Shown here: positions 9,021-51,559 of the stretch, piece after piece
Layout: each line of letters starts with the position of its first letter
How positions within the stretch are numbered: the stretch's first letter is position 1
Assembly: GCA_025558095.1 (NCBI GenBank)
Contig: JAIVFI010000037.1
Span: forward strand, 1 to 64,000
DNA: 64,000 nucleotides
Reading direction: 5' to 3'
Origin: Hyaloraphidium curvatum SAG 235-1
Taxonomy: Eukaryota; Fungi; Monoblepharomycota
The notes under the pieces: generated by a model
Told to the model about the DNA's origin: nothing
The model's database searches: none
The model's input: only the letters and a program-made list of their open reading frames with translations
Program-made: the position numbers and the translations under genes

Positions 9021-9023
9021 CGT

Positions 9024-10196: not shown

Positions 10197-11668
10197 TCAC
10201 CCCGCGCACATGGTCTCGAGGGTAAAGTACACTCCTGCGGCCCTCAACACCGTCCACAGCCCGAAACACAGCGTCACGCAGGTGACCGCCACCGTCCGCA
10301 CGACCCCCGCGTCCACCACGAACCCCACGAACCTTGCCCTTGCGCCCTCGGTCTGCGCAAACAGCGACAAGAGGGCGTCGTGGTCCGCCAGAGAGCGCGC
10401 GACGGCGGGTTGGTTGTGGGCGCGGGAGCGGAGTAGGAGGACGGAGGAGCGGGTGCGGCGGTACAGGTCCGCCGCGCGGCCGGTGCGGGCGTTGGCCGCG
10501 GCGACGGCGACGAGCTCGTCGCCGATGGCGATGGGCCACAGGAGGAGCATAACAGGGATCCAGAGGGGCACGCAGCCCGCTAGGACGGCGCTGAAGAGCA
10601 TCCACGCAACGAGGTTGGCGGCCATGAGGATGAGCACGAAGCGGCCGTTGGAGATGAAGGCCAGCTGGGCGGGCCAGGATTCGGCGAGACGGAGGTGCAG
10701 CGCCACGTAGGGCTCATCCGCGGCAGGCACGGGCTCCGGACCCCCTTCGACGGCGGCCCTGTGCCTTTCGACCATGTCCGAGAGGAGCAACGACAGAGCG
10801 CGGTGCTGCAGACGTCCAGAAAGATTGAGCACTCGGGAACTAGGAGCGTTGTAAGGCAGGATGAAGTGCGTGACGGGTGTGTAGGCAAGCGTAGCGCAGG
10901 CAAAGAGGGCAAAGAGGAGGATGCTCCACCAGGTCGACCACATGAGAGGGGCAAAGGTGACGAGAAGGGTGTAGGAGGCGAGGAAGAAGGCCGCAAAGAG
11001 AATAAGACTCTGAACAATGGGGTCCACCAGGTACATGATCCAGGTCGAGGTCAGAACGGGGCCGGCGCAGCTGGGCAAGGGACATGGGCAAAGCGGGTCC
11101 TCGGGATTGTGGCGGACCAGAGGCGAGACGTCCGGCTCCTCGCCCGGCTCCAAGTCCGGCACCTGGCACGGCACTTCGCGAGGCTCCGGGGCCAGCAACC
11201 GTCGCCAGCGGACCACGGTTGCGAAAGGGTTCGAGTCCAGCGACGGCACGGTCCGGGCATAGTTGGCGGCGGTCCAGATAGCCAGGCAACCGAGCAAGAC
11301 GTTCGCCACATTGTGGGCGGCGACCGCGGCAGCGCCGACGGCCGCCTGCTTCGCGCCGAACGCGCCCAACCGTGCGTTGAACACCAGGAGCGGCACCAGC
11401 AGCAGCGTCCAGCAGACGGAGCTCAGGATGATCCGCTCGCCCGAGTGCCGTGTCAAAAATCCAAACGCCGCAGAAAGCTGCAAGCGCGTGGTCGCCAGCG
11501 GCACTGGGAGGCCGTCCAGCCCCGAGAGCAGCGCAGCCGCGTCGAGCGCCGGGCCGCCCGCGTAGGTGCCGTCGTCGGGCGAAACCGCCCGCCGTTCGGC
11601 GGAGGTCAGCTCTATGGGCTTCTCGGGCCATTTCCGTCCGCCATTTGGTGATCCGGCCCGTCCGACAT
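10197..11668 (-). CDS. Unnamed 7-TM membrane protein (candidate GRL/DUF3537-like 7TMIC); 1-nt frameshift near codon 16
   Basis: Seven hydrophobic segments, HNPEDPLCPCPLPSCAG motif and C-terminal RARFVGFVVDAGVVRTVAVTCVTLCFGLWTVLR. ATG at 11668 reads MSDGPDHQMADGNGPR, then shifts relative to the paralog at 8294 (CCGAGAAG vs CCGAGGAAG). Confidence 0.7.
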
Positions 11669-12004
11669 GTCTGCTTGTGCTGCGCGTGCGGGCCTTCCTC
11701 GGGGCCTCTGCGATCTCCGCGATCGATGGGAACATTCCTCCGATCCACGTCTCCCACGCGATACAACCATGGCCCCGCCGCTGGTCTTGTGCCCATATGA
11801 TGCCATGTCGCGTGCCTGACTTGCTCTTTGATAGGCGCTGCCCGCGGCCGCCCTCGCCGCCGCGCTGGGCACATACCTCGCCGACCAGCGGTTGAACGTA
11901 TCGGGCGACGTGACGCGCATATAGTGGGTCCGCGACGTGTTGCGCACCTCCCACCTGCTCATTGCGTACCTCATTGACGTCCATGGGACAGCCGGCTGCT
12001 CTCG

Positions 12005-14114
12005 ATGGTCTCCTTCGCGACGAAGCGCGCCGCCGCCGGCCGCGCAAACGCCGCCTTCCTCCTCTTCGAAAACGCCGACGCCCACCCCGCCAAGATCGCC
12101 CTCCGCTCCGAAGACCGCAGGGAATGGACCTACCCCGCCGTCCGCGCCTCGGTCCTCGCCCTCGCCTCCTTCCTCCGCGCCGACCTTGCGCTTTCCCCGG
12201 GCTCCACCGTGGCCGTGCTGATGGACACCTCCCCCGCCATGGTGTTCTGCTACTACGCGTGCTACGCCTCGCGGACCGTCATGGCGGGGCTCAACACGCA
12301 CCTGGTGGGCCCGTCGCTGCTGCACTGCGTGCGGGCGTGCGGGGCGGCGGTGGTCATCGTCGAGCCGGCGTACGTGGAGCGGGTGGAGGCGATCAGGGGT
12401 GAGCTGGAGCGGGACGGGGTGCGGATTGTGCTCTGGGACGAGGGGGCCGAGGGGTCGGGGCCGGTGGTCAATGAACGGTACCTCCTGGCCCGCGCGACGG
12501 ATGGAGGGAAGGCGGTGCTCGAGGACATGGGCAAGACGCAGCTCACGGACCCGGCCTACGTCATGTTCACGTCCGGGGTAGGGGTTCTGGTCGTCGTACC
12601 GAAGTGCCTCCTCTGACAGCAGGCACGGGCAGACGACCGGCGTGCCAAAGGCCAACGTGCGCACACACCAAAACTCCATCTTCTTTGCCGCACCGGGTGG
12701 ACTGATCACATTTGCCGCTCCCAAAGCCAACGACGTCGTCCTCGGGTGTCTGTGGGTTACCCTCTTGTGCCTGCTAGAGTTCGTCTGGGACCCGCTAACG
12801 ACTCCCCAGCCCGCTGTGCCACGTCACCTGCTGGTTCGCCATGACGGGTGCCCTGGGGCAGGGCGCCACCTTTGTCCCGGTGCGCAAGTTCAGCGCGACA
12901 AAGTTCTGGCAGCAGGCCGCGGACCTCGGGGCCACGGTGTTCTACTGTGGGTGATGCGCGCATCTCTGCCGCCACAAGTGCCCACCTCGCTCCCCCCGCA
13001 GACGTCGGCGAGATGGCGCGCTACCTCGCCGCGCAACCCCCTTCCGACCACGAGAAGCGCCACCGCGTCCGCACGGTGGTCGGCAACGGCCTCCGGCGGG
13101 ACCTATTCCCCCTCTTCCCCACGCGCTTCGGCATCCCCCGCGTGGTCGAGATGTACGGCGCCTCGGACGGCACCTCGTTCCTGCTCAACGACTGGACCGC
13201 CGGCAGCCCCGGCGAGGGCAGCGTTGGGCGGGCGGGCCCGCTGCTGCGGAGGATGATGGGCGGGCCGGTGCTGCTGAAGGTGGATGCGGCGTCGGGGGAG
13301 GTGGTGAGGGGGGAGGACGGGCTGTGCAGGGCGGCGGGGCCGGGGGAGCCGGGGGAGTGCGTGAGCCCAGTGGGTTGCTTCCCCTCTGCAACCCGTGGTG
13401 TGTGTGGCTGACGGTTTGCGCAGTGGGTCGAGGGCGCGGTCAACTACCGCAACGACCCCACCTCGGTCGAGAAGAAGATCCTCCGCGACGTGTTCAAGAA
13501 GGGCGACGCCTTCTGGCGCATGGGCGACCTCCTCTCGCGGGACTCGGCCGGGCGCTACTACTTTGTCGACCGCCTCGGCGACACATTCCGCTGGAAATCC
13601 GAGAACGTATCGACGTTCGAGGTGGCGACGTCGCTGGGGGAGCATCCGGCGGTGGAGGACGCGACGGTGTACGGGGTCAAGGTGCCCGGGGCGGCGGGGA
13701 GAGCGGGGATGGCGATCGTGGTGCTCAAGGAGGCGTATCGGGGTTTGCCGAGGGAGGAGACGGAGAAGCTGATGCGGGAGCTGGGGAAGTTCGCGCTGGA
13801 GCGGATTCCCAGATGTGGGTGGCCGGTCTGTGATTGGCGACGGATCTAACGTCTCCGATGCGTCGACGTGCAGACGCGACGCCCGTGTTCGTCCGGCTGC
13901 AGGGCGAGATCGAGCTAACGGTGTCGCTGAAGCACCGCAAGCTCGAGTACCAGAACGAGGGCTACTCCACGGCGGACTGGTGGATGCCGCCAGGATCGTG
14001 AGTGTTTGACTTCGGGTTACGGTAGTGCGAAGGCTGATCGGTGCCAGGGACGAGTACGTGCCGTTCCGCGAAGAGGACATGGTCAAGATCGACGTCGGCA
14101 AGGCGCGACTGTGA
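12005..14114 (+). CDS. FAT1: Fatty acid transport protein / very-long-chain acyl-CoA synthetase (FATP/Fat1-like), multi-exon, C-terminal PTS1-like ARL
   Basis: YVMFTSG|TTGVPKA AMP-binding motif, EMYGASDG, FKKGDAFWRMGDLL, YFVDRLGDTFRWKSENVSTFEV FATP motif; ends DVGKARL*. Confidence 0.85.
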
Positions 14115-15398: not shown

Positions 15399-15842
15399 AG
15401 GCGTCGAAATGGGGGGAGCACTTTGGGCACCGACGATTTGGGGGGGAGGGGGACGCTAATGCCATCGAGGATTCGACGAAGCAGGCCGCATTGGTGCCGC
15501 CCACATTCTGTCCTCGCGCTCTTTCCCGCTGTCCCGCAGGATGCTCCTCCGTACACGAGCGGGGCTGGCGTACAGGGTTCCGTTGCAGCGACGGACGGGA
15601 TCGGGGCAGCGAAACGCCTCCAAACGATGGCGCTCCATCCATCGGGGTCGCACGAGGTCGGATCGGCGCGCTTTCGTTCGCGATGGCCCGTCTTTCCGTG
15701 CGATTACAAGTGCGCGCCGCCATGGGACGCCCGCTGCGAGGCCCATTCGCCCGAATACCCAGCCCCGGGATGCGGCGGACCGCTATCGGGCTCAAAGCAT
15801 TGTGAAATCGCTCGCAGAGTCCGTTCCTCGGCCTCCATCGCA

Positions 15843-15875
15843 AGTCAGTCACGGCACGAACGTCAGTCAAATCAG
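15843..15875 (+). promoter_or_regulatory. Conserved AGTCAGTCA..GTCAGTCAAA upstream motif of Sel1-kinase copy 1
   Basis: Same motif at 19693-19729, 55925-55960 (-) and 59559-59587, each about 80-125 nt upstream of the ATG. Confidence 0.55.
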
Positions 15876-15953
15876 CGACACCAGCCCGCACCCCCCCTCA
15901 GGGCCTCCACTCCCGCGTTCCTTCGGCGCTCGGACGGGTTCGGCGGGAAAGCG

Positions 15954-18558
15954 ATGTTTCGGAAGAAAGCCGCGGCGAAGCCTGTGAGCGCGGAGAGCGC
16001 GCAGACCGTGGAGAGCGTGGAGAGTGGAGAGGAGTGCCACCGTCGGGGTTGGCAGTACGAGAACGGCGACGGCGTCGCCAACGACCTCGTAGAGGCCGCG
16101 AAGTGGTACTGTAAGTCGGCGGACCAGGGCAACGCGAGCGGGCAGGTCAATCTCGGACGGTGCTACGAATATGGCTGGGGCGTGGCGAAGGATCTTGCCG
16201 AGGCCGCGAAGTGGTACCGCAAGTCGGCGGACCAGGGCAACGCCGTCGGGCAGGTCCACCTCGGACGGTGCTTTGAGAACGGCTGGGGCGTCGTCAAGGA
16301 CCTCGTAGAGGCCGCGAAGTGGTACCGCAAGTCGGCCGACCAGGGCAACGCTGATGGACAGGACAGCCTCGGCGCGTGCTACGAGAACGGGTCGGGTGTG
16401 GCGAAGGACCTCGCCGAAGCCAGCCGGTGGTACCGCAAATCGGCCGACCAGGGCGATGCGTACGGGCAGAAGAACCTAGGACGGTGCTACGAGAACGGCT
16501 GGGGCGTCGCCAACGACCTCGTAGAGGCCGCGAAGTGGTACCGCAAGTCGGCGGACCAGGGCAACGCGAGCGGGCAGTTCAACCTGGGACGGTGCTACGA
16601 ATATGGCTGGGGCGTGGCGAAGGATCTTGCCGAGGCCGCGAAGTGGTACCGCAAGTCGGCGGACCAGGGCAACGCCGTCGGGCAGGTCAACCTCGGACTG
16701 TGCTACGAGAACGGCTGGGGCGTAGCCAAGGATCTCGCAGAGGCTGCAAAGTGGTACCGCAAATCGGCCGACCAGGGCGATTCGTACGGGCAGAACCATC
16801 TCGGCCGGTGCTACGAGAACGGCTGGGGCGTCGCCAAGGATCTTGCCGAGGCGGCAAAGTGGTACCGAAAGGCGGCGGACCAGGGGAACGCCAGCGGGCA
16901 GGTCAATCTCGGAAGGCTTTACGAGAACGGCTGGGGCGTCGCCAAGGACCTCGCCGAGGCCTTGCGGTGGTACCGCAAATCGGCCGACCAGGGCAACTTG
17001 GACGGGCAGTACAATCTCGCACTTTGTTACCAGTTCGGCAAAGGCGTCGAAGTCAATCTCACCACGGCGCTGGATCTGTACCAGAAGGCCGCTGCGCAGG
17101 GTGACGAGGACGCCAAAGCTCGCGTGGAGCAGGTGCAGGCGGCCATCAACGTGCAGCGGGCTGCAGAGGAGCGCCGGCGGACGGAAGAGGCCGAGGCTGC
17201 CGAGCGGAGCCGTGCCGCTGCCGAGGCGCGCGCGAAGCAGGAAGCCGAAGCCGAAGCACGACGCCGGCGGGAGGAAAACTGGGCGAAGGAACGCGAGAGG
17301 CTGGAGCTCGAGCGCCGGCGCCAGGAGGCGGAAGCCGAAGCCCGTCGCCGCCGGGAGGAGGACCTGGCCCACGAGCGCGAGAGGCTGGAGCTCCAGCGCC
17401 GACGGATGGAGCTCGAGAACGAGGCCAAAGCGAGGGAGCTTGCCCTGCTTGCCGAAAGGTTGAAGCTGGAGCAGGAGCTCGCGGCGTTGAAGGTCCCGCA
17501 AGCCCAGACCCGGCTCGACGGATCGGCGCGGACGGCTGTTCCCAGCGCTCCTGGGAGCGCGGCCACGGATCGCACTGCCGACGAGGCCGGCAAGCCCAAC
17601 CTGGCGCGTTCCAAGACCTCGTTCTGGGTGGAAGAGGCCGACATTTCCTACGACCGGTCGAGCTGCCTCGGCAAGGGCGGCTTCGGGGTCGTCTATCGGG
17701 GCAAGTATCTTGACCTGACGGACGTGGCCGTCAAGGTGGCCCTCGACACGTACAGCACGGAGGAAGCCAGCGTCTTTCTCGAGGCCGAGGTCAAGGTCTG
17801 GGCTGAGCTGCCGGCCCACGACAATGGTGAGCGGTATGACTTTCGGCATGATGCGCATCCTGCTCACCAGATCGACTTCCAGTCGTCCCGCTCCTCGGCT
17901 ACCGCACCTCCCCGACGTTCCTGGTCACCAAGCTCTTCACGGGCGGGAGCATGAAGAGCTTCCTCGCCGCCCGGAACTGGGACCTCGCCCTCGCGCTGCA
18001 CCTCCTCGGCGACGCCGCCGTCGGCATGACCTTTCTCCACTCCAAGGGCGTCATCCACTCGGACCTCAAGGCCGAGAACGTGCTCGTCGAGGACGGCACC
18101 CGGATGCCCGTCGCTAAGATCGCCGACTTCGGCCTGGCCAAGGTGCGCACGCGGGTCGAGGACACCAAGGGGAACAAGGCGTACCAGTACCAGGGGCTCG
18201 CGGGGGCGACGATCCGGTACGCGCCGCCCGAGTTCTTCGACGAGGAGCCGCTGCGCAAGCCGTCGGACGTGTGGACGTTCGGGATGATGTGCTACCAGGT
18301 GCTTTCGGGCGGACGGGACCCGTTCTCGGACCTCACGAATCCGCCGGCTGTGAGTTGGCATTCGGCGCGAGCTTCCCGGCCTTGCTAACTGTTTTGCAGG
18401 TCATGAAGGCCATCTTTGGCGGCAAGCGCCCGCCGAGGCCCGACAACGTGCCGGATGCCGTGTGGTCGCTGATGCAGTCGTGCTGGAAGGAGGAGATGGG
18501 CGAGCGGCCGACAATGGCCGAGGTGGCGCGACAGCTCGTCCGGATCAGGGGTCGCTAG
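15954..18558 (+). CDS. Sel1-repeat (10 units) / coiled-coil / TKL-type protein kinase, copy 1
   Basis: 36-aa repeats GQxxLGxCYENGWGVAKDLAEAAKWYRKSADQG; E/R-rich coiled coil; GKGGFG, VAVK, HSDLKAEN, DFG, YAPPE, SDVWTFG. Introns 17827-17882 and 18350-18399. Confidence 0.92.
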
Positions 18559-19117: not shown

Positions 19118-19807
19118 ACGGGGGGTGGGGGATGCTTTTGCACTGAACGGGGGGGATTGGGAGGGGACGCTAATGCCATCGAGGATCTGACGAAGCAGGC
19201 CGGAGTGGTGCCGTCCGCGTCGTCCGCGTACCGTCCTTGCCTTCTTTCCCGCCCTCCGTCGCTGGCATCTCCAGGCAAGTCCCCTCCGCCCCGTCGTCCG
19301 CTCACCCGCCTTCGCCCATCGGGACCACCCTGCATCTCAGCGATCCCAACCTGCGCAGCGGGGAGCTCGCAGAGGAGCCGCGTCCCGCGACGGGGCGGAT
19401 GCGCACCGGGCGGCACATCACTCCGGTGCCCGGTGCAACGCCGAAGGACATCGGGGCATCGCGGTGCCTGGGTTCTATGCCAATCCATTCGGCGCGGAAA
19501 CAGGAGCACGGATCGGCGCCGTTCCGGCCGCGATGGCCCCTCTTTCCGTGCGACGCGGAGGGAGGGTCGCCGCCTCGCGCCCGCGGGGTGCGCCTTGGCC
19601 CCGAATTCCCCCAGAGCCGGATCCGGCGGATCACTATCGAGCTCAAGCATCAGCATGACGGCCGCAGAGTCCGTTTCTCGGCCTCCATCGCAAGTCAGTC
19701 ACGGCACGAAAGTCAGTCAGTCAAATCAGCGACACCAGCCCGCGCTCCCCCTCAGGGCCTCCACTCCCGCGTTCCTTCGGCGCTCGGACGGGTTCGCCGG
19801 GGGAGCG

Positions 19808-22800
19808 ATGTTTCGGAAGAAAGCCGCCGCGAAGCCTGAGAGCACGGAGAGCGCGGAGGAGTGCTTCAGCCGGGGCTATAAGCTCTACACCGGCGATGGC
19901 GTGCCCCAGGACCTGGCCGAGGCCGCAAAGTGGTTCCGCAAGGCTGCAGAGAAGGGACACGCAATGGGGCAGAACAATCTCGGCGTGCTCTATCGGGACG
20001 GTTCGGGCGTCGTTCAGGACCTTGATGAGGCCGCGCGGTGGTTCCGAAAGTCGGCCGACCAGGGCAACGCCCTTGGGCAGTGTAACCTCGGCGCGTGCTA
20101 CGAGAACGGCTCGGGCGTGGCCAAGGACCTCGCCGAAGCTCTGCGGTGGTATCGCAAATCGGCCGACCAGGGCAACGCGTACGGGCAGAAGGATTTGGGA
20201 CGGTGCTACGAGAACGGCTTGGGCGTCTCCAAGGACCTCGCAGAGGCCGCCAAGTGGTACCGCAAGTCGGCCGACCAGGGCAACGTGATCGCGCAGTACA
20301 ATCTCGGACGGTGCTACGAGAACGGCTGGGGCGTGGCCAAGGACCTTGTCGAAGCTGAGCGGTGGTACCGCAAGGCGGCCGACCAGGAGAACGTGATCGC
20401 GCAGTACAGTCTCGGACGGTGCTACGAGAACGGCTGGGGCGTTGCGCAGGACTATGCCGAAGCAGCACGGTGGTACCGCATGTCGGCCGAGCAGGGGGAC
20501 GCCTACGGCCAGAGGGCCCTCGGAACCTGCTACGAGAACGGCCGGGGCGTGGCCAAGGATCTTGCCGAGGCCGCGAAGTGGTACCGCAAGGCGGCCGACC
20601 AGGGCAACGCGATCGGGCAACACGACCTGGGACGGTGCTACGAGAACGGCTGGGGCGTGGCCAAGGACCTCCTCTTAGCTGAGAGGTGGTACCGCAAGTC
20701 GGCCGACCAGGGGAACGTGATCGCGCAGTCCGAAGTCGGACGGTGCTACGAGAACGGCTGGGGAGTGACCAAGGACCTTGCCCAGGCTGCAAAGTGGTAC
20801 CGCAAGTCGGCGGACCAGGGCAACGCCAGCGGGCAGGTCAACCTCGGACGGTGCTACGAGAACGGCTGGGGCGTGGCCAAGGATCTTGCCGAGGCCGCGA
20901 GGTGGTACCGCAAGGCGGCCGACCAGGGCAACGCGATCGGGCAACACGACCTGGGACGGTGCTACGAGAACGGCTGGGGCGTGGCCAAGGACCTCGTCTT
21001 AGCTGGGAGGTGGTACCGCAAGTCGGCCGACCAGGGGAACGTGATCGCGCAGTCCGAACTCGGACGGTGCTACGAGAACGGCTGGGGAGTGACCAAGGAC
21101 CTTGCCCAGGCTGCAAAGTGGTACCGCAAGTCGGCGGACCAGGGCAACGCCAGCGGGCAGGTCAACCTCGGACGGTGCTACGAGAACGGCTGGGGCGTGG
21201 CCAAGGACCTCGCCGAGGCTGCACTGTGGTACCGCAAGTCGGCGGACCAGGGCAATGCGCAGGGACAGCTCAACGTCGGACGATGCTACGAGAACGGATG
21301 GGACGTTGCGCAGGACCAGACCGAGGCGGTGCGGTGGTACCGCAAATCGGCCGACCAGGGCTACGCGTACGGCCAGTTCGCCCTCGGTCTCTGCTACGAG
21401 TACGGCAAGGCCGTCGAAGTCAATTTCACCTTGGCCCTGGATCTGTACCAGAAGGCCGCGGCACAGGGTCTTGAGGAGGCAAAGCAGGGCGTGGAGCGGG
21501 TGCAGATAGCCATCAATGAGCAGCGGGCTGCAGAGGAGCGCCGACGGAGAGAAGAGGCCGAGGCTGCCGAGCGGAGCCGTGCAGCTGCCGAGGGCCGCGC
21601 GAGGCAGGAAGCGGAAGCGGATGCGCGACGCCGGCGGGAGGAAAACTTGGCGAAGGAACGCGAGAGGCTGGAGCTCGTGGAGGCGGAAGCCGAAGCCCGT
21701 CGCCGCCGGGAGGAGGACCTGGCCCACGAGCGCGAGAGGCTGGAGCTCCAGCGCCGACGGATGGAGCTCGAGAACGAGGCCAAGGCGAAGGAGCTGGCGC
21801 TGCTTGCCGAAAGGTTGAAGCTGGAGCAGGAGCTCGCGGCGTTGAAGGTCCCGCAAGCCCAGACCCGGCTCGACGGATCGGCGCGGACGGCTGTTCCCAG
21901 CGCTCCTGGGAGCGCGGCCACGGATCGCACTGCCGACGAGGCCGGCAAGCCCAACCTGGCGCGTTCCAAGACCTCGTTCTGGGTGGAAGAGGCCGACATT
22001 TCCTACGACCGGTCGAGCTGCCTCGGCAAGGGCGGCTTCGGGGTCGTCTATCGGGGCAAGTATCTTGACCTGACGGACGTGGCCGTCAAGGTGGCCCTCG
22101 ACACGTACAGCACGGAGGAAGCCAACGTCTTTCTCGAGGCCGAGGTCAAAATCTGGGCCGAGCTGCCAGCCCACGACAACGGTGAGCGGAAGGATGGCGT
22201 CTGCCGCTGCGCGTCCTTGCTTATTCCGTCTTCTGCCAGTGGTCGCGCTGCTCGGCTACCGCACCTCCCCGACGTTCCTGGTCACCAAGCTCTTCACGGG
22301 CGGGAGCATGAAGAGCTTCCTCGCCGCCCGGAACTGGGACCTCGCCCTCGCGCTGCACCTCCTCGGCGACGCCGCCGTCGGCATGACCTTTCTCCACTCC
22401 AAGGGCGTCATCCACTCGGACCTCAAGGCCGAGAACGTGCTCGTCGAGGACGGCACCCGGATGCCCGTCGCCAAGATTGCCGATTTCGGCCTGGCCAAGG
22501 TGCGCACGCGGGTCGAGGACACCAAGGGGAACAAGGCGTACCAGTACAAGGGGCTCGCGGGGGCGACGATACGCTACGCGCCGCCCGAGTTCTTCGACGA
22601 GGAGCCGCTGCGCAAGCCGTCGGACGTGTGGACGTTCGGGATGATGTGCTACCAGGTGCTTTCGGGCGGCCGGGACCCGTTCTCGGACCTCACGAATCCG
22701 CCGGCTGTGAGTTGGCATTCGGCGCGAGCTTCCCGGCCTTGCTAACTGTTTTGCAGGTCATGAAGGCCATCTTTGGCGGCAAGCGCCCGCCGAGGCCCGA

Positions 22801-22915
22801 CAACGTGCCGGATGCCGTGTGGTCGCTGGTGCAGTCGTGCTGGAAGGAGGAGATGGGGGAGAGGCCGACGATGGCCGAGGTGGCGAGGGAGCTCATCCGC
22901 ATCAGGGGTCGCTAG
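19808..22915 (+). CDS. Sel1-repeat (15 units) / coiled-coil / TKL-type protein kinase, copy 2
   Basis: Same architecture as copy 1; kinase exons almost identical; two introns at the same positions. Confidence 0.92.
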   Translation: MFRKKAAAKPESTESAEECFSRGYKLYTGDGVPQDLAEAAKWFRKAAEKGHAMGQNNLGVLYRDGSGVVQDLDEAARWFRKSADQGNALGQCNLGACYENGSGVAKDLAEALRWYRKSADQGNAYGQKDLGRCYENGLGVSKDLAEAAKWYRKSADQGNVIAQYNLGRCYENGWGVAKDLVEAERWYRKAADQENVIAQYSLGRCYENGWGVAQDYAEAARWYRMSAEQGDAYGQRALGTCYENGRGVAKDLAEAAKWYRKAADQGNAIGQHDLGRCYENGWGVAKDLLLAERWYRKSADQGNVIAQSEVGRCYENGWGVTKDLAQAAKWYRKSADQGNASGQVNLGRCYENGWGVAKDLAEAARWYRKAADQGNAIGQHDLGRCYENGWGVAKDLVLAGRWYRKSADQGNVIAQSELGRCYENGWGVTKDLAQAAKWYRKSADQGNASGQVNLGRCYENGWGVAKDLAEAALWYRKSADQGNAQGQLNVGRCYENGWDVAQDQTEAVRWYRKSADQGYAYGQFALGLCYEYGKAVEVNFTLALDLYQKAAAQGLEEAKQGVERVQIAINEQRAAEERRRREEAEAAERSRAAAEGRARQEAEADARRRREENLAKERERLELVEAEAEARRRREEDLAHERERLELQRRRMELENEAKAKELALLAERLKLEQELAALKVPQAQTRLDGSARTAVPSAPGSAATDRTADEAGKPNLARSKTSFWVEEADISYDRSSCLGKGGFGVVYRGKYLDLTDVAVKVALDTYSTEEANVFLEAEVKIWAELPAHDNGERKDGVCRCASLLIPSSASGRAARLPHLPDVPGHQALHGREHEELPRRPELGPRPRAAPPRRRRRRHDLSPLQGRHPLGPQGRERARRGRHPDARRQDCRFRPGQGAHAGRGHQGEQGVPVQGARGGDDTLRAARVLRRGAAAQAVGRVDVRDDVLPGAFGRPGPVLGPHESAGCELAFGASFPALLTVLQVMKAIFGGKRPPRPDNVPDAVWSLVQSCWKEEMGERPTMAEVARELIRIRGR

Positions 22916-23084
22916 GAGTCAAAATCATCAAAGCATTGCAATCCAATACTGTTTCGATGACTTCGATGTCTGCCGCCTAAGAACGCATGGCTCTGCGGGT
23001 GATCCGAGTAGACGTCAGAGTGAGCGGCCCGCCGGTGGCCAATCCGGCTTCCATCCCCAACTCGATTGTCGACCACGCGCCGCC

Positions 23085-24887: not shown

Positions 24888-25026
24888 AACTAGAATAGAG
24901 GCGGCGATTCGCCGACGTGTTGGTTGAAACGGGTAGGACCGAACGATACAAGCAAAGAAAGACATGTTTTCACGGCAGCCAACAAGCCGGAATCCCCAAC
25001 GGCATCCAAGAATGAGCAGACGAGGT

Positions 25027-37347: not shown

Positions 37348-37414
37348 GCCCTGGGCGGGGTGTGGGTGGGTTGAAAAGGTTGAATGCAATCGGCATGCGA
37401 TTTCCATGGAAGCC

Positions 37415-38179: not shown

Positions 38180-38325
38180 GACTGAACAGCGACGCGCTCT
38201 GATGGCGATCCTGAGCCGGGCCAATGGTGAATCGGCCTAACCAGGTCACTTCCGGGAGAATTGGCAGGGGCACACGAGTGACGAGAGGGAGACAAAAGGG
38301 ATTCCCGCAACGGGCCCTGTTTACG

Positions 38326-40180
38326 ATGCTCGTCACCGCGGTGCTGCTCGCCTCCGCGGCCTACTTGATCTTTGAATTGTGGTGGAGACGCTCCGCCGAC
38401 CGAGGCGATGGCGACGCGGTCGCGACGCTCGTCGGCGTGCCGTGCGTGTCCTCCTCGGCTTGGTCCCGACGCCGGCACTCACTCGTCCTGCGCCTCCCGA
38501 AGCTTCATCAACCGCCCCTCGCTGTCCAACGCGAAAAAGTCCTTCGTGACCGACCTGGACGCGATCCGCGCGACGGGCCGCAAGAACCTCCGATGGGTCA
38601 ACCCTCTCCGGCCCGGCGTCACCGTGGTCGTCGTGTCGGACCCCGCCGTGCTCCGCGAGATCTTCGTCGGTGCGAAATGGGAGAACTTCACGCGCGCGCA
38701 CCCGGCCATGGGCCCGCAGCAGGAATACGCCGGCGGGCTGATCCTCCAGCCCAACGGGGACGAGTGGCGGCAGGCGAGGGCGCTGTTCGACCGCACCTTC
38801 ACCACCCCGGCCGTGCGGTCGTACGTGCCGATCCTGGTGGACCTGCGGGACACGTTCATGGGGCAGATCCGAAAGGTCAACGCCGCGGCGCCCGACGGGT
38901 TCGACATCCAGCCCGAGCTCTTCAAGTTCACCTTCGAGTGGGACACTCCCTCGGCGACCTGGATTGCGGGCGACTGACAATGTTTCCGCCCCCGCAGCGC
39001 CATCTGCAGGCTCGCGTTCGGCGAGGAGATCGGGGCCATGACGACCAAGGAGGGCGAGAAGCTCCTCGACGCGTGGAACGAGTGGTTCGGCGCGACCTCG
39101 ATCCTCATGCTCGTCAACATCCTCTTCTCCAACGACGCCTGGGTACGCCCCGATCGACTCGGCCGACGGACCCGACGCTCATCCCCGCGCCCGCAGAAAT
39201 ACTTCACGGGCCTCAAGAAGAACACCGAGCGCGGCCGCGACACCATCTACGGCCTGATCCAGCGCGGCATCGACCGCCGCAAGCGCGGGGAGGACCTGGA
39301 CCGGGTCAGCATCCTGGACAACGCGATGCGGAGCGAGAAGCTGCCGGCGTTCATGAAGAACGACGAGGCGGAGCTTAGGAGGCAGTTTTGCACTCTGCTG
39401 TGGGTCTCCCGGGGCGAAGCGGGCCCGGCGGGCGCTCACGGCCGCCGTTTTCCAGGTTCGCCGGCCACGACACGACCGCGGGCACCACCGCCATCGCCAC
39501 GCACTTCCTCGCGCACAACCCCAGGTGGCAGAAGGCCATCCGCGCCGAGGTCGCCGCGGCCGTCCCCGCGGGCGAGCCCATCTCCCTCGAGCCCCTCGAG
39601 AACCTACCCGCGCTGAATGCGGTGGTCAAGGAGACCCTGCGGATCCTGCCCGCGGCGCCGTACGGCGGGACGAGGGTGATGGGCTGCGACATGGACTTCA
39701 CCTACGTGGACGGGGTCGACGGCCGAAGCAAGACGATCAAGTTCCGCGAAGGAGATTGGATCTTTCCTTTCGTGTACGGGGCGCAGCACGACCGGGATTA
39801 CTGGGCCCAGGATCCGGACGTGTGGGACCCTCAACGCTGGCTCGACGATCCGAACGGGGGAGCAAAGGTGATCCCGCCACACACCCGGGAAGTCGAGGCG
39901 CTGATGCCGCAGCGACAGAACCTCTACGCCAACAGCCCGTTCGGCAACGGAGCGCGCCGCTGTATCGGGGAACGGTAGGGGGACCCGCCCTAAGTCATGG
40001 CACGCAGGCTGATCGTCCCGCCCTCCCAGGCTCGCTCTCGGGGAGACCCGCGTCCTCCTCGCCTCGATCCTCCGCGAGTTCGACATCGCGCCCGGGGACT
40101 ACGTCTTCGACGTCAAGAACGAGGCGACGGTGTCGGCCGCCAACGGCGTCAAGGTCAGGCTCGTCCCCGTCAAGGCCTAG
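38326..40180 (+). CDS. Cytochrome P450 (multi-exon), paralog of 23085-24887
   Basis: FAGHDTT, KETLR, WDPQRW, FGNGARRCIGE; shares RRKRGEDLDRVSILD with the first P450. Confidence 0.92.
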
Positions 40181-40219
40181 TGTGACATCCCTGTATTGGA
40201 GCAACAGCACGCTGCCGGG

Positions 40220-40971
40220 TCACAACCTCTCCTTGTACTCCCGGGCAAAGAACTCGGCCATGGTCTCCCCCTCGTACGGCGACGGCTCGTTCTTCTCCAC
40301 CCAGAGCTTCTCCGCGGGCGTGCGCGGCGCGGGCGGGCTGATCCCCGACTCGCGCCAGAGGTCCGCCGTTGGCTCCTCGATGTGCAGCTGGGGCCCAAGA
40401 GGGAATACCGTCAGGTGGGGCGCGAATGATCCGGGAACGAGGCCCACCTCCCACTCGTAGCCCTTGTCCGCGATGAAGGGCTTGAACTTTGTCCCGAAAG
40501 AAGCCCGTTCAGTCGGAATCCCGGCCACCGTGCCCGATGCAGCCACCCACCCGCGACTCGAGGGCCGTGATGCTCCTCTGCCGGTCCTTCTCGGACCGGT
40601 TCGCCCGCGCCAGGTGCTGGCTCACAATCCTCACGAACGGCTTCCCCGTCCGCGACGCCCGCTCGTCGTGGGACTCGTTGCCGATGAAGAACGAGTCGGC
40701 CTCCACGGGGATGAAGAGGACGATCACGTAGAACGCGGGAAGGCCGACGGAGGTGCTGGTAGGCGGTCGGAGGCGGGTAAGCGGCGAGCGCGGGCCCGAG
40801 GCACGGGACGAGGTGCTCACTACATCGCCGTGAGGGACTTGGCGATGGCCCGCTTCTCCTCGGGAGAGAAGAGGGTCGCAGGCGCGTAGATTCCTAGACG
40901 GCGGGCGACGCGCTCCAGCGGCTGCCGGGGAGCCCGACGGACGCGACCGATGGCCCACGGTGAAGCGGCAT
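40220..40971 (-). CDS. Fungal-type putative oxalocrotonate tautomerase (Tautomerase_3 / cis-CaaD-like)
   Basis: Spliced MPLHRIYAPATLFSPEEKRAIAKSLTAMYTSVGLPAFYVIVLF..FVRIVSQHLAR..ADKGYEWE..DLWRESG..AEKLWVEKN, with N-terminal catalytic Pro. Confidence 0.8.
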
Positions 40972-41204
40972 GTCTCGATGCAGGTCTATCGAGGGAAATT
41001 CGCGGGTTGCAGTGCGTCTGCGTTGCGGAGCTGCGGACCGGAGATTCAAGTAGCGGTCGGTCTCGAGTTCTGCCGCCGGGACCCGGAAACCACATGGCGG
41101 AATTTAGAAATACCGCTACAGGGAAGCCCAGGGCTGCGATAGATCCATCAAGATCTGATTTCCCGTCATCCAGTGGATGCCGGAGACTGCGTCGATGGAG
41201 GCGG

Positions 41205-42811
41205 TTATCTTCGTACAAACCCGCCGCGCGTTCCACTTACGGGGCACACCATCTCGATCGTCACGCCGACCCCCGCTCCGCGCAGCACGCTCCAGAGCCC
41301 GACCACCAGGGTAAACAGCGTCGCCACGATGGTGCGCACCAGGTCGTAGGTGATGGGCACGCCGAACGCGCGGACGCGGTAGAGATCCACGTCCGCGAAG
41401 CCGGCGAGGATGGGCTCGTGCCACGCTGCAGACGTGGCGAGGTCGGTGCGACCGCGGGCGGAAGCGGAGGCGCCGATGGAGCGGAGGGAGTGCGAGGCCG
41501 AGCGGTACAGGGCGGCTATGCGGTCCGGGGAGGTGTTGGCGGCGGCCAGGACCGAGAGCTCAAAGACGAGCAAGAACAGGACGAGGTAAAGAACGCCGGC
41601 GAGGAGGTTGGCCGGAATGCAGGACGATCCGATCTGCGAAAGGGAGCCAGGAATGAGGAATCAAGAAACGCTGAAGCGCCTCCTCCTCCCCCGCAACCCA
41701 CAAGAATGATCAGGAGCCCGACCAAAGTCCCAAGCAGGCCCGCCAATGCAACGGCGCGACGGGCGTCCGTGCCTGCTTTTGTCTGCCTCCAGGTCGTGAT
41801 CAGCGCGGCGTGCAGTGCCATGTAGGGCTCCGACTCGGCATCACGCGGCTTCCATGCCCCCACTGGCTGGGCAAGAGCGTCCCGGAGGCGTGCAAGCAGG
41901 TCGTCCAGACAGCGCTGGGCGGCGCGACGGCGCATCCTGGTGTCGAGCCCAAACACGGCAGCATTGCGGGCATGCCCTCCCAGGACCACAATGGCAGGCA
42001 TTGCCGAGATGACGACAATGCCGAAGACGGATAGCGTGGCGGCCCACGGGGTCGACCAGGTAGAAACGCCAAAGGTGACGATCGGGGTCCAAACGTACAG
42101 CACCACTGCAAACGACAGCAACCCGATAATCTGCGCCACGGCTGATGCGGTATAGAAGAAAAAAACCGCACGGATCAGCCCGCCGGTGCAGCTCGGTTTC
42201 GGGCAAGTGCACAAGGAGTCCCCGGGGACGTGCTGCGTGAACAATGTGCCCCCCGCCTGGGGGAGCTCGAGATAGCGGACGACGCCCGCGAGAACGTGGC
42301 CGTCGGCAGACGACCCGGAGCTGGTCGCGTCGTCCGGCCGCATGAAGACGTCCTTCTCGGAGGGGCGGAACCGACCAACGAAAACGCGCGAGTCCCAAAT
42401 CGCAAATGTCAAGACGTAGGCGACCGTGGCCACGATCAGCTGTCGGGTACCGAACCGGCCGTCGTTCTCGATCCATACGAGCGCCACGAAGAACAGCGTG
42501 AACGCTTGTTGCACGATCCGAAGGGGCAGGTAGTGTGGCAGCACATGTTTCGCCAGCAACGGGTGGAGCCGCGCGAGCAGCCGCGCCGCCGGCGCCCCTT
42601 CGAGCCCCGCAAAAAGCACGTCCCAGCCGAGCGGCGGCGCCGCCGCTCTCTCCTCGCCGACCCGCACCGCGAGCTCGCGCAGTTCGTCGGGCACGTCCGC
42701 CGAGTCCGGGCCGGCTACCGGCGGCGCCGGGAACAGCGCCGCCCACTCCGCCGAGGAAAACAGAGAACGAGATGCCCCGCTTAGAGGGGCGCCGTCTTCG
42801 GCGGCGTCCAT
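41205..42811 (-). CDS. 7-TM family member (candidate 7TMIC), intact, one intron
   Basis: HVPGDSLCTCPKPSCTG, SEPYMALH..W, RVRAFGVPITYDLVRTIVATLFTLVVGLWSVLR..TIEMVC. Confidence 0.8.
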
Positions 42812-44821: not shown

Positions 44822-44869
44822 TGTCTTGGAATGTGAATGCCTTTACCCGCACCCCTCCATGGGCGCCTC

Positions 44870-45012: not shown

Positions 45013-45629
45013 CCCCCGCGGACGCCGCGCTGCCCGCCGCGCCGGGGGGGCATCCGCTGTTCCGGTGCGAGTTTGCGGGGGGCGTGCCGGGGATCGCGGG
45101 TAGGAGGCTGTACTGGATGGACTGCGGGTGCGCGGTGCCGCTGTCGTTCGCGGGCGGGGACGGGTACGTGAGGATGAGGATCCAGAGGGGCGGGGTGCAG
45201 CTGGCGGGGTTGGCCGTCTACTAAGTACTATTGTAGCGCTGTGGAATTGGTGCCCATGTACATGTGATCTAATTTTGACGGAGCGGCATCCTTAGCGGCC
45301 CATCCCTCAATGGATTCTGACTCGGGTCTAGACACCGAGACAACTCATGTCGTCGTTCCTTGTATCTCTCGGGGGCGGCGAGCAGAGCCAATGGGTGACA
45401 CGGCGCTGACCTCCCGGAACTCGTTCACTGGTTTGTCGCGCCTTGTGCGTCCAGCGGCCGCCAAATGCCGCGTTCGAAAACAGACCCTGCCGTTTGTCAG
45501 CAGCCGGGTGGCGGGGCTCCGATGACGTCCGGCGTCCCTTGACACCGCCCTTCACGGACTCACCCTCCAACAACATTGACTCCGGACACCGCGAGAGAAC
45601 CGCTCTCCCTGCGGCCCTGCCCCCCATCA

Positions 45630-48600
45630 ATGAAGTTCCTTCACCCAGCGGCCGCGGCCCCCACCGAGGAGCCGCCGCCGCGCTCCGACACTCCGCCGGC
45701 CAGCCGGACACCGGACCTGCTGCAGCGCATGTCGCCTCGGAGCCGCACGGACTCCAACTCGTGGCCGGGCGACACCGACACCGACAAGTCCGAGTCGTCG
45801 TTCCGCCCGCCCGGCGCAGAGCGCCGCCGCGGAGCGCGCTTCGGGCGGGGCCCCGCAGACGCCGCCCCGACGTCGCTGGCCGGCCTCCTCCGCCGCGACC
45901 TCCGCATCGCCCTGCTCTCCATCGGGCTGCTTCCGGACCCCGAGGCGCCCACCCCGGCGGGAAGGCTGGCCGGTTCGCCCCGCGCAGCCGCCGCGGAGTG
46001 GGCCAAGGCCGCAGCGTGGACTGCCGCCTTCTGCCTCGCCTTCTTCATCTTCGCATACCTCAGCCACATGTTCTACGACTCCTTTGGCTTCAGCTCCGTT
46101 TGGCTGCCCAATGGCCTGATCGTCGGGGCGTACATGGGCCTGCACTGGCGCGCCCGCTGGCTCCTCCCGGCCGCGACGTTCGCGACCAACACCCTCTCCA
46201 ACCACTACGTGGCGCACGAGCTGTGGGCGGGTGCCGCGGCGTCCGCCGCCGCCATTATCCTGGAGATCCTCCTTATCTCCTGGGTAACCCTGGCGCTGGC
46301 CAGTGCCTTTTCGCGGCGCCCTGGGGTCCGCCTCGACCTGGAATCGCTGTGGCACGTCCTCGCCTTCGGTATTGGCATGCTCTTCTGCCTGCCGGCGAAC
46401 GCGCTGTACGCCTGGGTGCAGATGGTGATCCAGGGGCAGCAAGGCGTGCCGTTCCCCGAGGTCATGCTCAGGTACATCGACTACGGCGCCGTGGTCGCCT
46501 GGACCCCCTTCATCGTGGCGGCCTGCAACACCCGGCCCAACTGGAAAGCGTGGAAAAAGCATCCGCTCAGGATCGTCGGCCTCGGCCTCATCCTCTTCCT
46601 CATCATCTCGATCACCATCATGCTGAGCAGCAAGCTCAAGGACGTGCTCTTCGGCGCCGTCGTCGGCCTCTTCTTCTCCATGCCCCTCATCATCCTCTCC
46701 GCCCCCCTCACCGAATCCAAGTCCCGCCTAGCGGTCGTCACCATGTGCGCCATGGTGGCGAGCATCATGAGCCTCATCATGATCCCGTGCTCGTATTACG
46801 TCGAACTGCGCAAGGGCAACGTCACCGACACCTCCCCGGGCCAGCTCCTGCTGCGGCACCTCCTTTGGATCCAGATCTGCATCTGCATCACGGTCTTTTC
46901 CAGCCTCCTTTTCGCGGATCTGCTGCTTGCGGTGGACCACGCCAAGGCCACCGTCGAGGAGCGGGTCCGAGTGCGCACGGAGCAGCTCCGCAAGGCCCGC
47001 GCGGCCGCCGAGCAGGCCGACCGGGAGAAGGGCGCATTCATCTTCTTCCTTTGCCACGAGCTTCGCAACCCCCTGCACGCCGTGAGCAACCTCACAGAGT
47101 CGCTCATCGAGGAGCGCGCAGCCGGGTTGAAGCAGGAGGCCGGCGCCGCGGCGCTCGAGGAGCCAGCGAGCCCGCTACTTGGACAAATCGACACCAGCCT
47201 GCTCGTCGAAGGGCGGCGGGAGGGCGCGCCGGCGGGAGAGCCGGCCGAGGCGGACCCGCTGCATGCGATACACCTCTGCACGGGGTACATGCTCGCGCTG
47301 CTGGCGGATGTGCTCGATGCGGGGAGGTTCGAGAGCGGCGCCGTGAGGCTCGACAGTTCGAGGACGGACCTGGCGGAGATCACCGAGTCGGTGTCGGCCA
47401 TGGCGGGGGAAATGGCAAGGACGCACCAGGTGGCTTTCGAACTGAAGGTGGGCTTATCGCGCCAGCGGTACGATAACTTTGCTCACGTTGTCTTCGGTAG
47501 ATGGCGCCCGATGTGCCCCGCTACGTCATGTGCGACCGCCTGCGTCTGCAGCAGGTCATCAACAACCTCCTCTCCAACGCCTTCAAGTTCACCAAGGCCG
47601 GCTCCATCACCCTCTCCATCGACTGCGGCCCCAAGAGCGCGCCCGTGCCCGCGGACCAGGTCTCCATCCCCATCCCCTCCGACGCCTCATCCACCACGGG
47701 CAGCTCCTCCGCCGCCACAGCCGTCGACCCCACCCCGTCGTGCCGCATGCTCCGGATCACCTGCGCTGACACCGGCGTCGGCATTCCCCCCGCCGTCCTC
47801 CCCACGCTTTTCCAGCCCTGGACGCAGGCTTCGGTGAGCACCTACAGGGATTACGGCGGATCCGGCCTGGGGCTGGCCATCGCGGCGCAGATCGTCGCGT
47901 TGATGGGGGGCGAGATCGGGGCGAGGAGCGAGGTGGGGGTGGGGACGGAGTTCGAGTTTTGGGTGCCGCTGGAGGAGTGTGCGGGGCCGGAGGTGGTCGA
48001 GGGGGCAAAGGAGGCGCGCAAGACGGGGGCGGACGTGCGCAAGGGGGTGTCGGAGATGACGTTGGCTTCCGGGCTGCCGGAGGCCCCGGTTGCGGCCCTG
48101 CCGGGGCCTTTCTGGGACTCGCAAGTGGCCGTGGATGCAACGACGGACCCGTTGCCCCCGCCTCGGACTCGGCGAATCCTCGTCACGGACGATTCGGCCA
48201 TCAACCGACGGATCTTGGTCAAGATGCTCCGCGCCGTGCTGGCCCGCCACGAGCCCGCCACGCGCGACGACTGGGAGATCGACGAGGCCGAGAACGGCGC
48301 CGAGGCCGTGGACTTGGTGCGCGCGGACCTCGCGGGACCCAAGGAGCTCGCGCTGGTGCTGATGGACGTGGTTATGCCCGTGATGGACGGGTTCGAGGCC
48401 ACGCGCGAGATACGGCGGCTGCAGCGCGAGGCAATTGAAGCGGCCCAGGCGCCGCTGCCGACCGAGAGCGCGGTGTCGACATCGACCCTGGGGGCGGACA
48501 TGGACGAGGAGCCGTGGGAGCTTCCAGTGGTGATCACCACGGCGAATCAGGTCAGCAATTCGCCGGACCAGGAGTGGGCGTTGTGCGGGGCCAGCGAGGC

Positions 48601-48667
48601 CATCTCGAAGCCGTTTGGAAAGGACAAGATCGAGGCGCTGCTCGTCAAGCACGGGTGCCTGGCGTGA
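45630..48667 (+). CDS. Membrane-bound hybrid histidine kinase (MASE1-like multi-TM sensor, HisKA, HATPase, REC)
   Basis: SSVWLPNGL plus about 8-9 TMs; FLCHELRNPL; NNLLSNAFKFT; DTGVGI; YGGSGLGLAI; VTDDSAIN, LMDVVMPVMDG, SKPF. Intron 47448-47500. Confidence 0.9.
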
Positions 48668-48834
48668 TGTTGGCCCCTGTAATCGGCATGGCTGTCGAAC
48701 ATGTTTTGGCTCGGTGCAGTTTCGCCGCCAGCCGGGTGACCGTGCAGTGCGCCAACCGATCTGCGCGGGCTGAAACAGTCTGCCCCAACAGCAGACGGTG
48801 CCACGCCGTTACGACGGTGACCCCCGTCCCAGCG

Positions 48835-49846: not shown

Positions 49847-49983
49847 CGCCCTCAGGCCTCCCATCCCCCTGGCGAGAGGCAGTTCCTCGGCCACATATCC
49901 AATCGATCACATTTTGGTACGGATCTGGAGCGAAGGCGACGCCGTGCAGAAACATCAACGCGTCGCGGCTCGGATGACGCGGA

Positions 49984-51559
49984 ATGTCGCCCGAGGAAAC
50001 GGACCCCAAATGGCCCCCGGCATTCACGCCCACGGTCTGGGCGGCCCTGTTCCCCGCGTACCCGTCACCGCCGCCGCCGGCCGACATGCCCCCCGAACTC
50101 GCGCGCCTCGCGTCCCCCGCGGTCGCTGCGCAGGCGCGCGCCGAGCGGCCCATGACCCTGAAGCAGCTGCTCGCGGGACTCCCTATCGCACCGCTTGAGC
50201 GGGGCTTGGTGCGGGTGCAGCTGGCCGTGCTGGGCAAGGCGGGCGGGAACGCGACGTTCTTCCTCCACAGGGCGCTCTACGTGGCGTGCCGGGTGGCGCT
50301 CATGCCCGCACTCGTCTGGATCGGGAACTCGTCGTACGGGCTGTTCGGAACGAGGCAGCTGGTGGCCATGACGGTCGGCTACGCCGTGCAGCAGGGGATG
50401 TGGGAGCTCGGTATCATGCGCGGCCGCGTTTACGGGAAGGAGGAGGAAGTCTTCCTGGGGATCCCCGAGGCGCAGTCAGCGCTGGACAATCATCTCATGG
50501 CGGGCGTAGCTAGGTACCGTCTCCTGCAGGAAGACGCCTCGGACGTGGAGGCCACTCCGGGCGAACTTGCCGCCGTGCTCCTGGAACACGAACCCGGCGA
50601 CACGCTGTGCTCTTGCCCGAAAAGCAGATGCGCAGGTCGTCAACTGGACGCTGTGCCTGCACTCGGCCTCGCCACCTTCGCCGCCATCCAGTGCGGGCAG
50701 TTCGTCGTGTTTCTCATCGTTTCCTTCTGGACGGTCCTGGTTACCTTTCGCGGATTCACGTGGAGCTCGCCCTGGGCTGCCACCCTCGTAGCCGTTGCGG
50801 TAGGCTATGTTGCCCTCCACCTCGTATTTGTCACGCTCGGCGTCAGCATGGGCATGTCCAACTTCGCGATTTTCGGGTTGGAGATGCGGCTTCGGCGCCG
50901 CGCAATGAAGCACTGCCTCGATGCCTCATAGCAAGGCTGGAGGGCCGACTCGCCAACGCTGAGGAAGAAGGGCTGCCTTCGGAAGCTGAATCGGAGCCAT
51001 ACGTCGTGTTGCACGCGGCCCTGGCAACGTCGTGGAGCTCGCGTCTGTCCTTGTCCGAGAGCAACCGCTTCGTTTCCCTCATGGGATTCCTGGGGGACTT
51101 TCTTGCCATCGTTATCGTCATGGTGAGCCGCTCTCCCTCGCTTATCTCTGACCACGCTGACGCAGTGCTTCAAACATCCCAGATTTCTTCGTCCTGCATC
51201 ACCGCCCCGTTCCTTGCCTCCTTCCTGTGGATGGGTTCCATCATCCTCGTGTTCGACCTCATCAACCTTGCCGCCGCCAACTCCGAAACCTCGCGCATCG
51301 CCGCGCTCTACTCCTCCGCGGTCTTCGCGCCGGCCCATCTTCGCCCGTGGCGGCCGCGATCGGGTGGCACGAAAAGATCCTGCGCGGCTTCACGGACGTG
51401 GACGCGTACCGCGCGCGGTTCTTCGAGGTGCCGGTGACCCCGGCGCTGGTGCGGACCGCGGCGGTGACGGCGTTCACGGTCGGCGTTGGAATGTGGAGCG
51501 TGCTCAGGGGGGCGGGGATCGGGGTGACGATCGAGATGGCTTGCCCGTCGGCCGCCTAG
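49984..51559 (+). pseudogene. 7-TM family member with frameshifts and a small deletion
   Basis: HEPGDTLCSCPKSRCAG; SEPYVVLH..W in a second frame; RARFFEVPVTPALVRTAAVTAFTVGVGMWSVLR..TIEMAC in a further frame. Confidence 0.75.

Follow-up and report, generated by a model that had tools for sequence, protein, structure and literature searches.

A stretch of 64,000 nucleotides (nt) of the fungus Hyaloraphidium curvatum (contig C37:1-64000, in the following the window) carries members of a large family of seven-transmembrane proteins that we read as a lineage-specific group with the fold of insect odorant receptors (ORs) as well as gustatory receptors (GRs), i.e., of the seven-transmembrane ion channels (7TMICs). 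By analogy, they would form tetrameric ligand-gated channels whose paralogues differ in their ligands. We assign this reading a probability of about 0.7. H. curvatum is an aquatic, non-swimming monoblepharid fungus of chytrid grade, and its assembly comprises 31.9 Mb in 55 contigs with a GC content of approximately 67%. Five homologous loci and one small fragment were detected in the window by tblastn with two uninterrupted open reading frames (ORFs) and by a scan of the six-frame translation with a hidden Markov model (HMM) of the family; all were found where a preliminary description, made from the DNA letters, had placed them. Genes A, B and C are intact, and B was seen transcribed. Gene D and the copy at 8294-9283 are decayed, and debris of a further duplication is present besides. 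The features are as follows, with TM for transmembrane segment and aa for amino acids:

8294-9283, plus strand: truncated copy, annotated as P0152, 329 aa, TM4-TM7 missing.
9021-9581, no strand assigned: debris of a rearranged duplication, with copies of gene A's 5' end, of the divergent promoter region and of the neighboring AMP-binding gene's 5' end.
10200-11735, minus strand: gene A, intact, intron-less, 512 codons (512 aa), stop codon at 10197-10199, identical to annotated P0151.
10239-10409, minus strand: TM7 region of gene A, residues 443-499, with TM7a (443-460), a 15-residue linker and TM7b (476-499).
11064-11135, minus strand: H/D/C/C/C motif of gene A, residues 201-224, in the long TM2-TM3 loop, predicted to be cytoplasmic.
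35722-37347, plus strand: gene B, intact, transcribed; exon 1 at 35722-36909, exon 2 at 36964-37344, stop codon at 37345-37347.
41205-42811, minus strand: gene C, intact, 512 aa; exon 1 at 41702-42811, exon 2 at 41208-41633, stop codon at 41205-41207.
49984-51556, plus strand: gene D, with the family intron at 51123-51182 (60 nt) and two frame changes.

The family was characterized on an alignment of 108 sequences; 98 members were scanned with Pfam models and 118 full-length members were inspected for the TM7 motif of GRs. Gene C was represented by its database protein P0067, the exons of gene B were handled individually, and residues are numbered after gene A throughout. Family-averaged hydropathy presented seven peaks, each with a matching helix in both structural models described below. 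This confirmed the seven hydrophobic segments of the preliminary description, with short loops between TM1 and TM2, TM3 and TM4, and TM5 and TM6, and long loops between TM2 and TM3, TM4 and TM5, and TM6 and TM7. The mean lengths in the 108 members were 8.5, 15 and 6 residues for the extracellular loops EL1, EL2 and EL3 and 14 residues for the C-terminal tail, compared with 76, 77 and 69 residues for the intracellular loops IL1, IL2 and IL3. Lysine and arginine together numbered 2.1 per protein in the putative outer loops (0.048 per residue) versus 12.1 in the 15-residue inner flanks (0.112 per residue); EL1 was the exception to this inside-positive bias. According to the positive-inside rule, the charge bias would place the N-terminus in the cytoplasm and the C-terminus outside, which is the inverse of the topology of G protein-coupled receptors.

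Conservation was distributed unevenly along the chain. TM7b reached 2.6 bits versus 1.2-1.4 bits in TM1-TM5, the lowest values observed, and the TM7 hairpin, TM7a, the TM5-6 loop and the tail were also high. The C-terminal consensus of the 108 sequences, AAxN...LYxxA...LRxL...HxxxLxxF......RARFxGFxVxxGxxRTxxVTxxTVxVGLWxxLRGxGV...C, recovered the motif that had been noticed in the window copies. Residues 443-499, the most conserved part of the family, constitute a putative anchor and pore segment; a small beta-hairpin around the invariant G471 occupies the linker between TM7a and TM7b (DSSP on the gene A model). TM7b carries a polar stripe, T481/T485/T488/G492/S495 (i, i+4, i+7, i+11, i+14), flanked by R480 and R498. 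N415, G471, R480, T488 (96%) and R498 were among the other conserved positions of the alignment. Two further conserved elements lie outside the TM7 region. In the first intracellular loop of approximately 76 residues, the motif H209-x3-D213-x2-C216-x-C218-x4-C223 has invariant H209, C216 and C223, while D213 and C218 are present in at least 94% of the sequences. This stretch (residues 201-224) was modeled in gene A with predicted local distance difference test (pLDDT) values of 85-89; it looks like a metal-binding knuckle and is possibly a metal site. The second element is a pair of near-invariant cysteines, of which C388 belongs to the TM5-6 loop and C510 to the C-terminal tail. A small beta-bridge from this loop to the tail adjoins the pair on the predicted outer side in both models; C388 and C510 could form a disulfide.

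Confident AlphaFold2 models were obtained for gene A with 108 paralogues (pLDDT 89.3, predicted template modelling score 0.86) and for gene C with 98 paralogues (pLDDT 90.5, predicted template modelling score 0.89). In an exhaustive VIA-align comparison with 48,161 PDB representatives, the best full-length structural matches of both models were insect ORs and GRs, including those of the protein starting at 42811 (gene C) that had been suggested for folding. Less clearly, Foldseek against the PDB likewise ranked insect GRs and ORs at the top, with probabilities up to 0.97 and template modelling (TM) scores of 0.28-0.41. A shape search of the ESM Atlas returned as best hits unnamed clusters of approximately 400 aa from cnidarians and echinoderms with TM scores of 0.66-0.68; gustatory receptor-like proteins (GRLs) are on record for one cnidarian (Nematostella vectensis) and one echinoderm (SpurGRL1). 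The helices of gene A measured 45 residues for TM5, 47 for TM6, 18 for TM7a and 24 for TM7b, the latter two separated by the linker of 15 residues. In gene C, TM6 had 52 residues and TM7 was split into helices 433-449 and 466-489. Seven transmembrane segments, outer loops shorter than inner loops, an intracellular N-terminus with an extracellular C-terminus, long TM4-6 helices and a split TM7 are the grounds on which 7TMICs have been recognized (Himmel, Moi & Benton 2023). All of them were found here, save that TM4 is not one continuous helix, with the orientation judged from the charge bias. The seven-transmembrane architecture of the Gr/Or/GRL proteins, proposed at the outset, is supported for the two modeled members by their best full-length matches together with topology and helix arrangement.

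A predicted assembly points in the same direction. Four copies of gene A residues 268-512 obtained an ESMFold2 score of 0.64 versus 0.00 for the best of three controls, on a truncated construct outside the calibration of the test. Among solved structures, a score of 0.64 was reached by 21 of 30 same-chain pairs and by none of 23 single-chain proteins. Three runs agreed in at least 88% of the contacts, with a partner pLDDT of at least 60. The contacts involved the cytoplasmic end of TM6 (426-440), TM7a (444-461) and the start of TM5 (337-348), and none were predicted for TM7b. This contact region corresponds to the anchor-domain region of ORs and GRs. The predicted tetramer supports a likeness to ORs and GRs; it does not speak for binding between the subunits.

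Several observations weigh against the assignment to the OR/GR fold and against a channel of the insect kind. None of the 98 members matched the models 7tm_6, 7tm_7, Trehalose_recp, DUF3537 or PHTF at E ≤ 10, and in scans with Pfam the five proteins of the window and the 98 members alike produced nothing but noise. Against the sequences of the PDB, a single protein retrieved nothing relevant and the family profile found no OR or GR. The models PF12056 and PF08395 found nothing in a six-frame search of the genome, a search that had no working positive control. The TM7 motif of GRs and GRLs, (T/S)Yhhhhh(Q/K/E)(F/L/M), was present in 0 of 118 members within the last 60 residues, even in a relaxed form; only T488 might correspond to one of its positions. 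The Foldseek matches had no significant E-value (0.05-0.7 for ORs and GRs, 0.046 at best). Both models show a kink or break in TM4, which consists of a membrane helix of 24 residues, a break of 5-7 residues and a cytoplasmic helix of 30-31 residues. Conserved arginines flank TM7b on either side, which would not be expected of a pore for cations; should they point into the pore, they would favor anions over cations as the permeating ions. The tetramer test, with a truncated chain in four copies from a eukaryote, lay outside the calibrated range and may reflect memory of the solved ORs and GRs. A protein language model placed gene A in the proximity of DUF3537 (0.92, with low recognition), while a second member, P0002, reached at most 0.82. 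Since the lead was not reproduced with P0002, it was not relied on.

The sequence resemblance to DUF3537 and to the '(G)F.(I/V)D' hairpin of the superfamily, which the preliminary description had put forward, received no support from HMMs: matches to PF12056, 7tm_7 or 7tm_6 at E ≤ 10 were absent from all 98 members. Because a GR/GRL motif, a Pfam match and, in searches with single-family HMMs, a profile link are missing, the family was filed as a structurally defined candidate 7TMIC and not as a member of the GR/GRL, OR or DUF3537 families. Another explanation would be that the likeness of the folds is convergent, or an artefact of matching helical bundles, and that the family represents an unrelated new class of seven-helix membrane proteins. 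We regard this as improbable.

The family is large and has so far been seen in H. curvatum only. Compared with its own genome, gene B yielded at least 117 exon-level matches on many contigs, with 80 of 734 first-look candidates scored. A profile from 12 family sequences retrieved 454 representatives at E ≤ 1e-3, 283 of them at E ≤ 1e-30, from 1.84 billion clustered proteins, and all 20 representatives that were looked up by name, drawn from the best 150 of the 454, were "hypothetical proteins" of H. curvatum. Word-indexed protein searches returned 1-5 H. curvatum proteins each and nothing else; their prefilter was swamped by low-complexity words, and they therefore say little about other taxa. 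A DNA pattern for D-x2-C-P-C-x4-C occurred 257 times in the genome versus 4 times for the reversed control. As the exact motif is present in 59% of the sampled members, roughly 400-430 loci can be estimated, pseudogenes included. We conclude that the family comprises about 400 loci in a 32-Mb genome, the restriction to H. curvatum referring to the 20 named relatives. This agrees with the lineage-specific birth-and-death family that had been expected from the window.

Excluding the pair of gene A and the copy at 8294, the window members shared 26-43% aa identity over the aligned pieces, and short C-terminal pieces of C and D shared 62% over 69 aa. The identities of 26-43% indicate an old family rather than a recent repeat, and from these sequences it appears to be old and dispersed, with local duplications. 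Values of dN/dS between close paralogues ranged from 0.27 to 0.49, which argues for constraint on the genes. Four annotated members (P0007, P0012, P0040 and P0114) have 710-788 aa, far more than 500 aa, and P0118 carries the additional Pfam domains PF13563 and PF07823; these five are probably merged gene models.

We infer that the likeness goes back to homology and not to convergence, and that the proteins form tetramers, conduct ions, are gated by ligands and act in sensing. In the most likely mechanism, proposed by analogy, each subunit would have a cytoplasmic N-terminus and an external C-terminus, and four subunits would be joined by a cytoplasmic anchor domain, composed of TM7a and the extended parts of TM5 and TM6. 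The central pore would be lined by the conserved TM7b helices. Each subunit may have its ligand pocket in the highly variable bundle of TM1-TM5 (TM1-TM5/6), and the small molecules to which the channel responds would differ from paralogue to paralogue. An alternative accepts the OR/GR-like fold as real and takes the proteins not for ligand-gated sensory channels, but for constitutive or regulated channels, transporters or scaffolds of plasma or internal membranes, for example, whose diversification would have had a driver other than chemosensing, such as conflict with viruses, parasites or toxins or self/non-self recognition. It is not known what plant DUF3537, PHTF and most unicellular 7TMICs do, and immune-like systems, too, typically comprise very large and rapidly evolving families with pseudogenes. 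The non-flagellate H. curvatum has no obvious use for chemotaxis, and the arginines at the ends of TM7b as well as the cytoplasmic H/C motif are foreign to insect receptors. However, insect ORs and other 7TMICs have been described with the same pairing of a variable TM1-5 bundle and a conserved TM7 plus anchor, and the dN/dS values, which are gene-wide and not site by site, reveal constraint and no overall positive selection. We hold this alternative to be unlikely, although it is the most probable of the rival explanations considered here.

If the proteins are ligand-gated sensory channels, a non-flagellate unicellular fungus may have independently built a repertoire of approximately 400 OR/GR-fold channels, i.e., of insect scale. 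We put this forward tentatively, at somewhat less than even odds. The repertoire would include additions of its own: a possibly zinc-binding module in IL1, the outer cysteine pair, and rings of TM7b arginines that could make the pore anion-selective.

Ongoing duplication and decay are seen at the individual loci. Gene A gave a family-HMM match at 10203-11555 on the minus strand (E 1.7e-128). Its start had been given as 11668; the annotated start is 11735, and 11668 is the position where the likeness to the copy at 8294 begins. In this copy, P0152, the first ~243 aa duplicate the 5' half of gene A (TM1-TM3) in inverted orientation, and the remaining ORF is unrelated. The nucleotide identity was 81% between 8294-8956 and 11668-11007. 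At the protein level, 8387-9022 on the plus strand shared 75% aa identity with gene A residues 37-264 and covered HMM positions 39-239 only. The debris next to it is a direct duplicate in which 9021-9097 aligned with 11550-11625 (84%) and 9223-9581 with 11729-12087 (93%); tblastn located a gene A fragment of 23 aa on the minus strand at 9092-9024. At their beginnings, two ORFs in this region, 9499-10038 (plus strand) and 9314-9601 (minus strand), repeat almost identically the 5' end of the AMP-binding gene and the region upstream of gene A. Both arose from the local segmental duplication and are probably not genes.

Gene B matched the family HMM at 35725-37341 on the plus strand (E 1.3e-149). 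The uninterrupted ORF of 541 aa originally described reads through an intron that is removed in the RNA. This intron of 54 nt (36910-36963, GT..AG, phase 0) lies in frame, and a contig from a public RNA-type run of the same organism (X1) joined 36384-36909 to 36964-37233. The predicted product thus has 523 aa, as the RNA contigs splice the 54 nt from the 541-codon ORF. An insert of 18 aa, which only gene B presented in the alignment, was considered as a real loop and ruled out, since the RNA contigs identify it as the intron. The C-terminal exon of gene B (36964-37344) had a dS of 0.26 and 80% aa identity to a paralogue on contig C6 (L003:2685-3077), and exon 1 a dS of about 0.9 to another close paralogue on contig C38 (L002:1525-2694). 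This contrast, drawn from two different paralogues, is suggestive only; gene conversion of the conserved pore/anchor exon could account for it, and so could a strong codon constraint.

Gene C, with family-HMM matches at 42793-41693 and 41648-41235 on the minus strand, has exons 100% identical to P0067 (KAI9004941.1). Its intron of 68 nt (41634-41701, GT..AG, phase 0) occupies the same position as that of gene B, in both genes directly before the codons for I-G-x-x-C-[IV]-P. In an RNA contig with a depth of 759, positions 41241-41493, which lie in the last exon of gene C, are joined to minus-strand exons further downstream (regions 41187-41493 and 37212-41186). The join spans an intron of 54 nt, CT..AC, with the donor directly after the VCP codons, and the contig runs on into a gene on the plus strand whose introns are GT..AG. 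This could be a read-through transcript or an overlapping neighbor, or gene C may have an alternative 3' end. Gene D had been listed among the five homologues; it is disrupted. Its family-HMM matches were split over three frames on the plus strand (49984-50922, 50922-51353 and 51269-51553), with frameshifts near 50905-50925, beside a duplicated TGCCTC, and near 51318-51330. Introns were considered for the two frame changes and rejected, as there is neither room for them nor a GT..AG at either site. Both lesions are bypassed in the annotated protein, KAI9004945.1 (P0131, 466 aa), which thereby lacks the conserved RLxRRA segment. Read from the assembled sequence, gene D is a probable pseudogene.

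Numerous dispersed copies and the rearranged fragments that adjoin gene A, in a genome of 67% GC that is rich in spurious ORFs, could also be expected if the copies were cargo or debris of mobile elements, or annotation artefacts, and not cellular genes. Yet paralogues with only 26-43% identity and no common flanking repeats within the window, a phase-0 intron that is conserved in position and spliced in the RNA, dN/dS values below 0.5 and confident predicted folds contradict such an origin, which we consider highly improbable.

Besides the family members, the window contains neighboring genes unrelated to the seven-transmembrane family:

12005-13849, plus strand: AMP-binding (acyl-CoA synthetase-like) enzyme.
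22773-24302, plus strand: cytochrome P450.
45576-47837, plus strand: HisKA histidine-kinase ORF.
52746-54209, plus strand: flavin amine oxidase.
56467-57765, plus strand: zf-MYND protein.

A second multi-copy family is located at 15423-17954 (plus strand), 19157-22915 (plus strand), 54362-55390 (minus strand) and 59680-61218 (plus strand). Its proteins contain 10-15 Sel1 repeats, encoded by tandem units of 108 bp, and at least one of them (19157-22915) carries a protein-kinase domain. The copies are 75-95% identical at the nucleotide level, which indicates that this family is much younger than the seven-transmembrane family.

Solved insect 7TMICs include BmGr9 (8vc1), DmGr43a (8jm9), MhOR5 (7lic), AaegOR10 (8v00/8v02), AgamOR28 (8v3c/8v3d) and ApisOR5-Orco (8z9z). 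In BmGr9, the lengths of TM5, TM6, TM7a, linker and TM7b are 53, 45, 15, 14 and 21 residues, closely tracked by the 45, 47, 18, 15 and 24 residues of gene A. As in the H. curvatum family, insect ORs and other 7TMICs combine a variable TM1-5 bundle with a conserved TM7 and anchor. The H. curvatum family differs from insect ORs and GRs in a similarity that is not detectable by HMMs, in the missing TM7 motif and in the fungal host. Unlike the insect receptors, it also possesses an IL1 of ~76 residues with the H/D/C/C/C motif, a kinked or broken TM4, the cysteine pair of the TM5-6 loop and the C-terminal tail, and arginines at the ends of TM7b.

Among fungi, two Spizellomyces chytrids have one GRL gene each, SpunGRL1 and SpalGRL1 (Benton et al. 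2020, PMC7746228), and a later structural screen reported 7TMICs in Chytridiomycota and Blastocladiomycota. The chytrid GRLs likewise come from chytrid-grade fungi and show the GRL pattern of secondary structure with a largely unrecognizable TM7 motif. By their description, they are single-copy genes found by similarity to GRLs, whereas the H. curvatum family has ~400 loci and no detectable sequence link. No paper pairing Hyaloraphidium with gustatory receptors was found in the library searched, and the genus is not mentioned in the main text of the 7TMIC surveys. Plant DUF3537 (PF12056) and the PHTF-like Class-B 7TMICs share with the H. curvatum family a 7TMIC core fold that lacks the TM7 motif of GRs (Himmel, Moi & Benton 2023). 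The first intracellular loop is enlarged in PHTF-like proteins as well, where it is described as long, next to the ~76 residues of IL1 in H. curvatum. In PHTF this loop extends over hundreds of residues.

The 7TMIC superfamily ranges over animals, plants, protists and a few chytrids, and its non-animal functions are unknown. Outside animals, the counts reported per species are low: Thecamonas and Vitrella have six 7TMICs each, and for higher plants 4-12 DUF3537 genes are given. If the insect-scale repertoire of ligand-gated channels is real, it would exceed every other non-animal expansion of 7TMICs, and large combinatorial chemoreceptor arrays of the OR/GR fold would not be an animal invention. 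The H. curvatum family would also offer a tractable microbial system for the question of what ancestral 7TMICs sense and conduct. With ~400 loci, it would represent the first large non-animal 7TMIC expansion, far above the counts reported outside animals.

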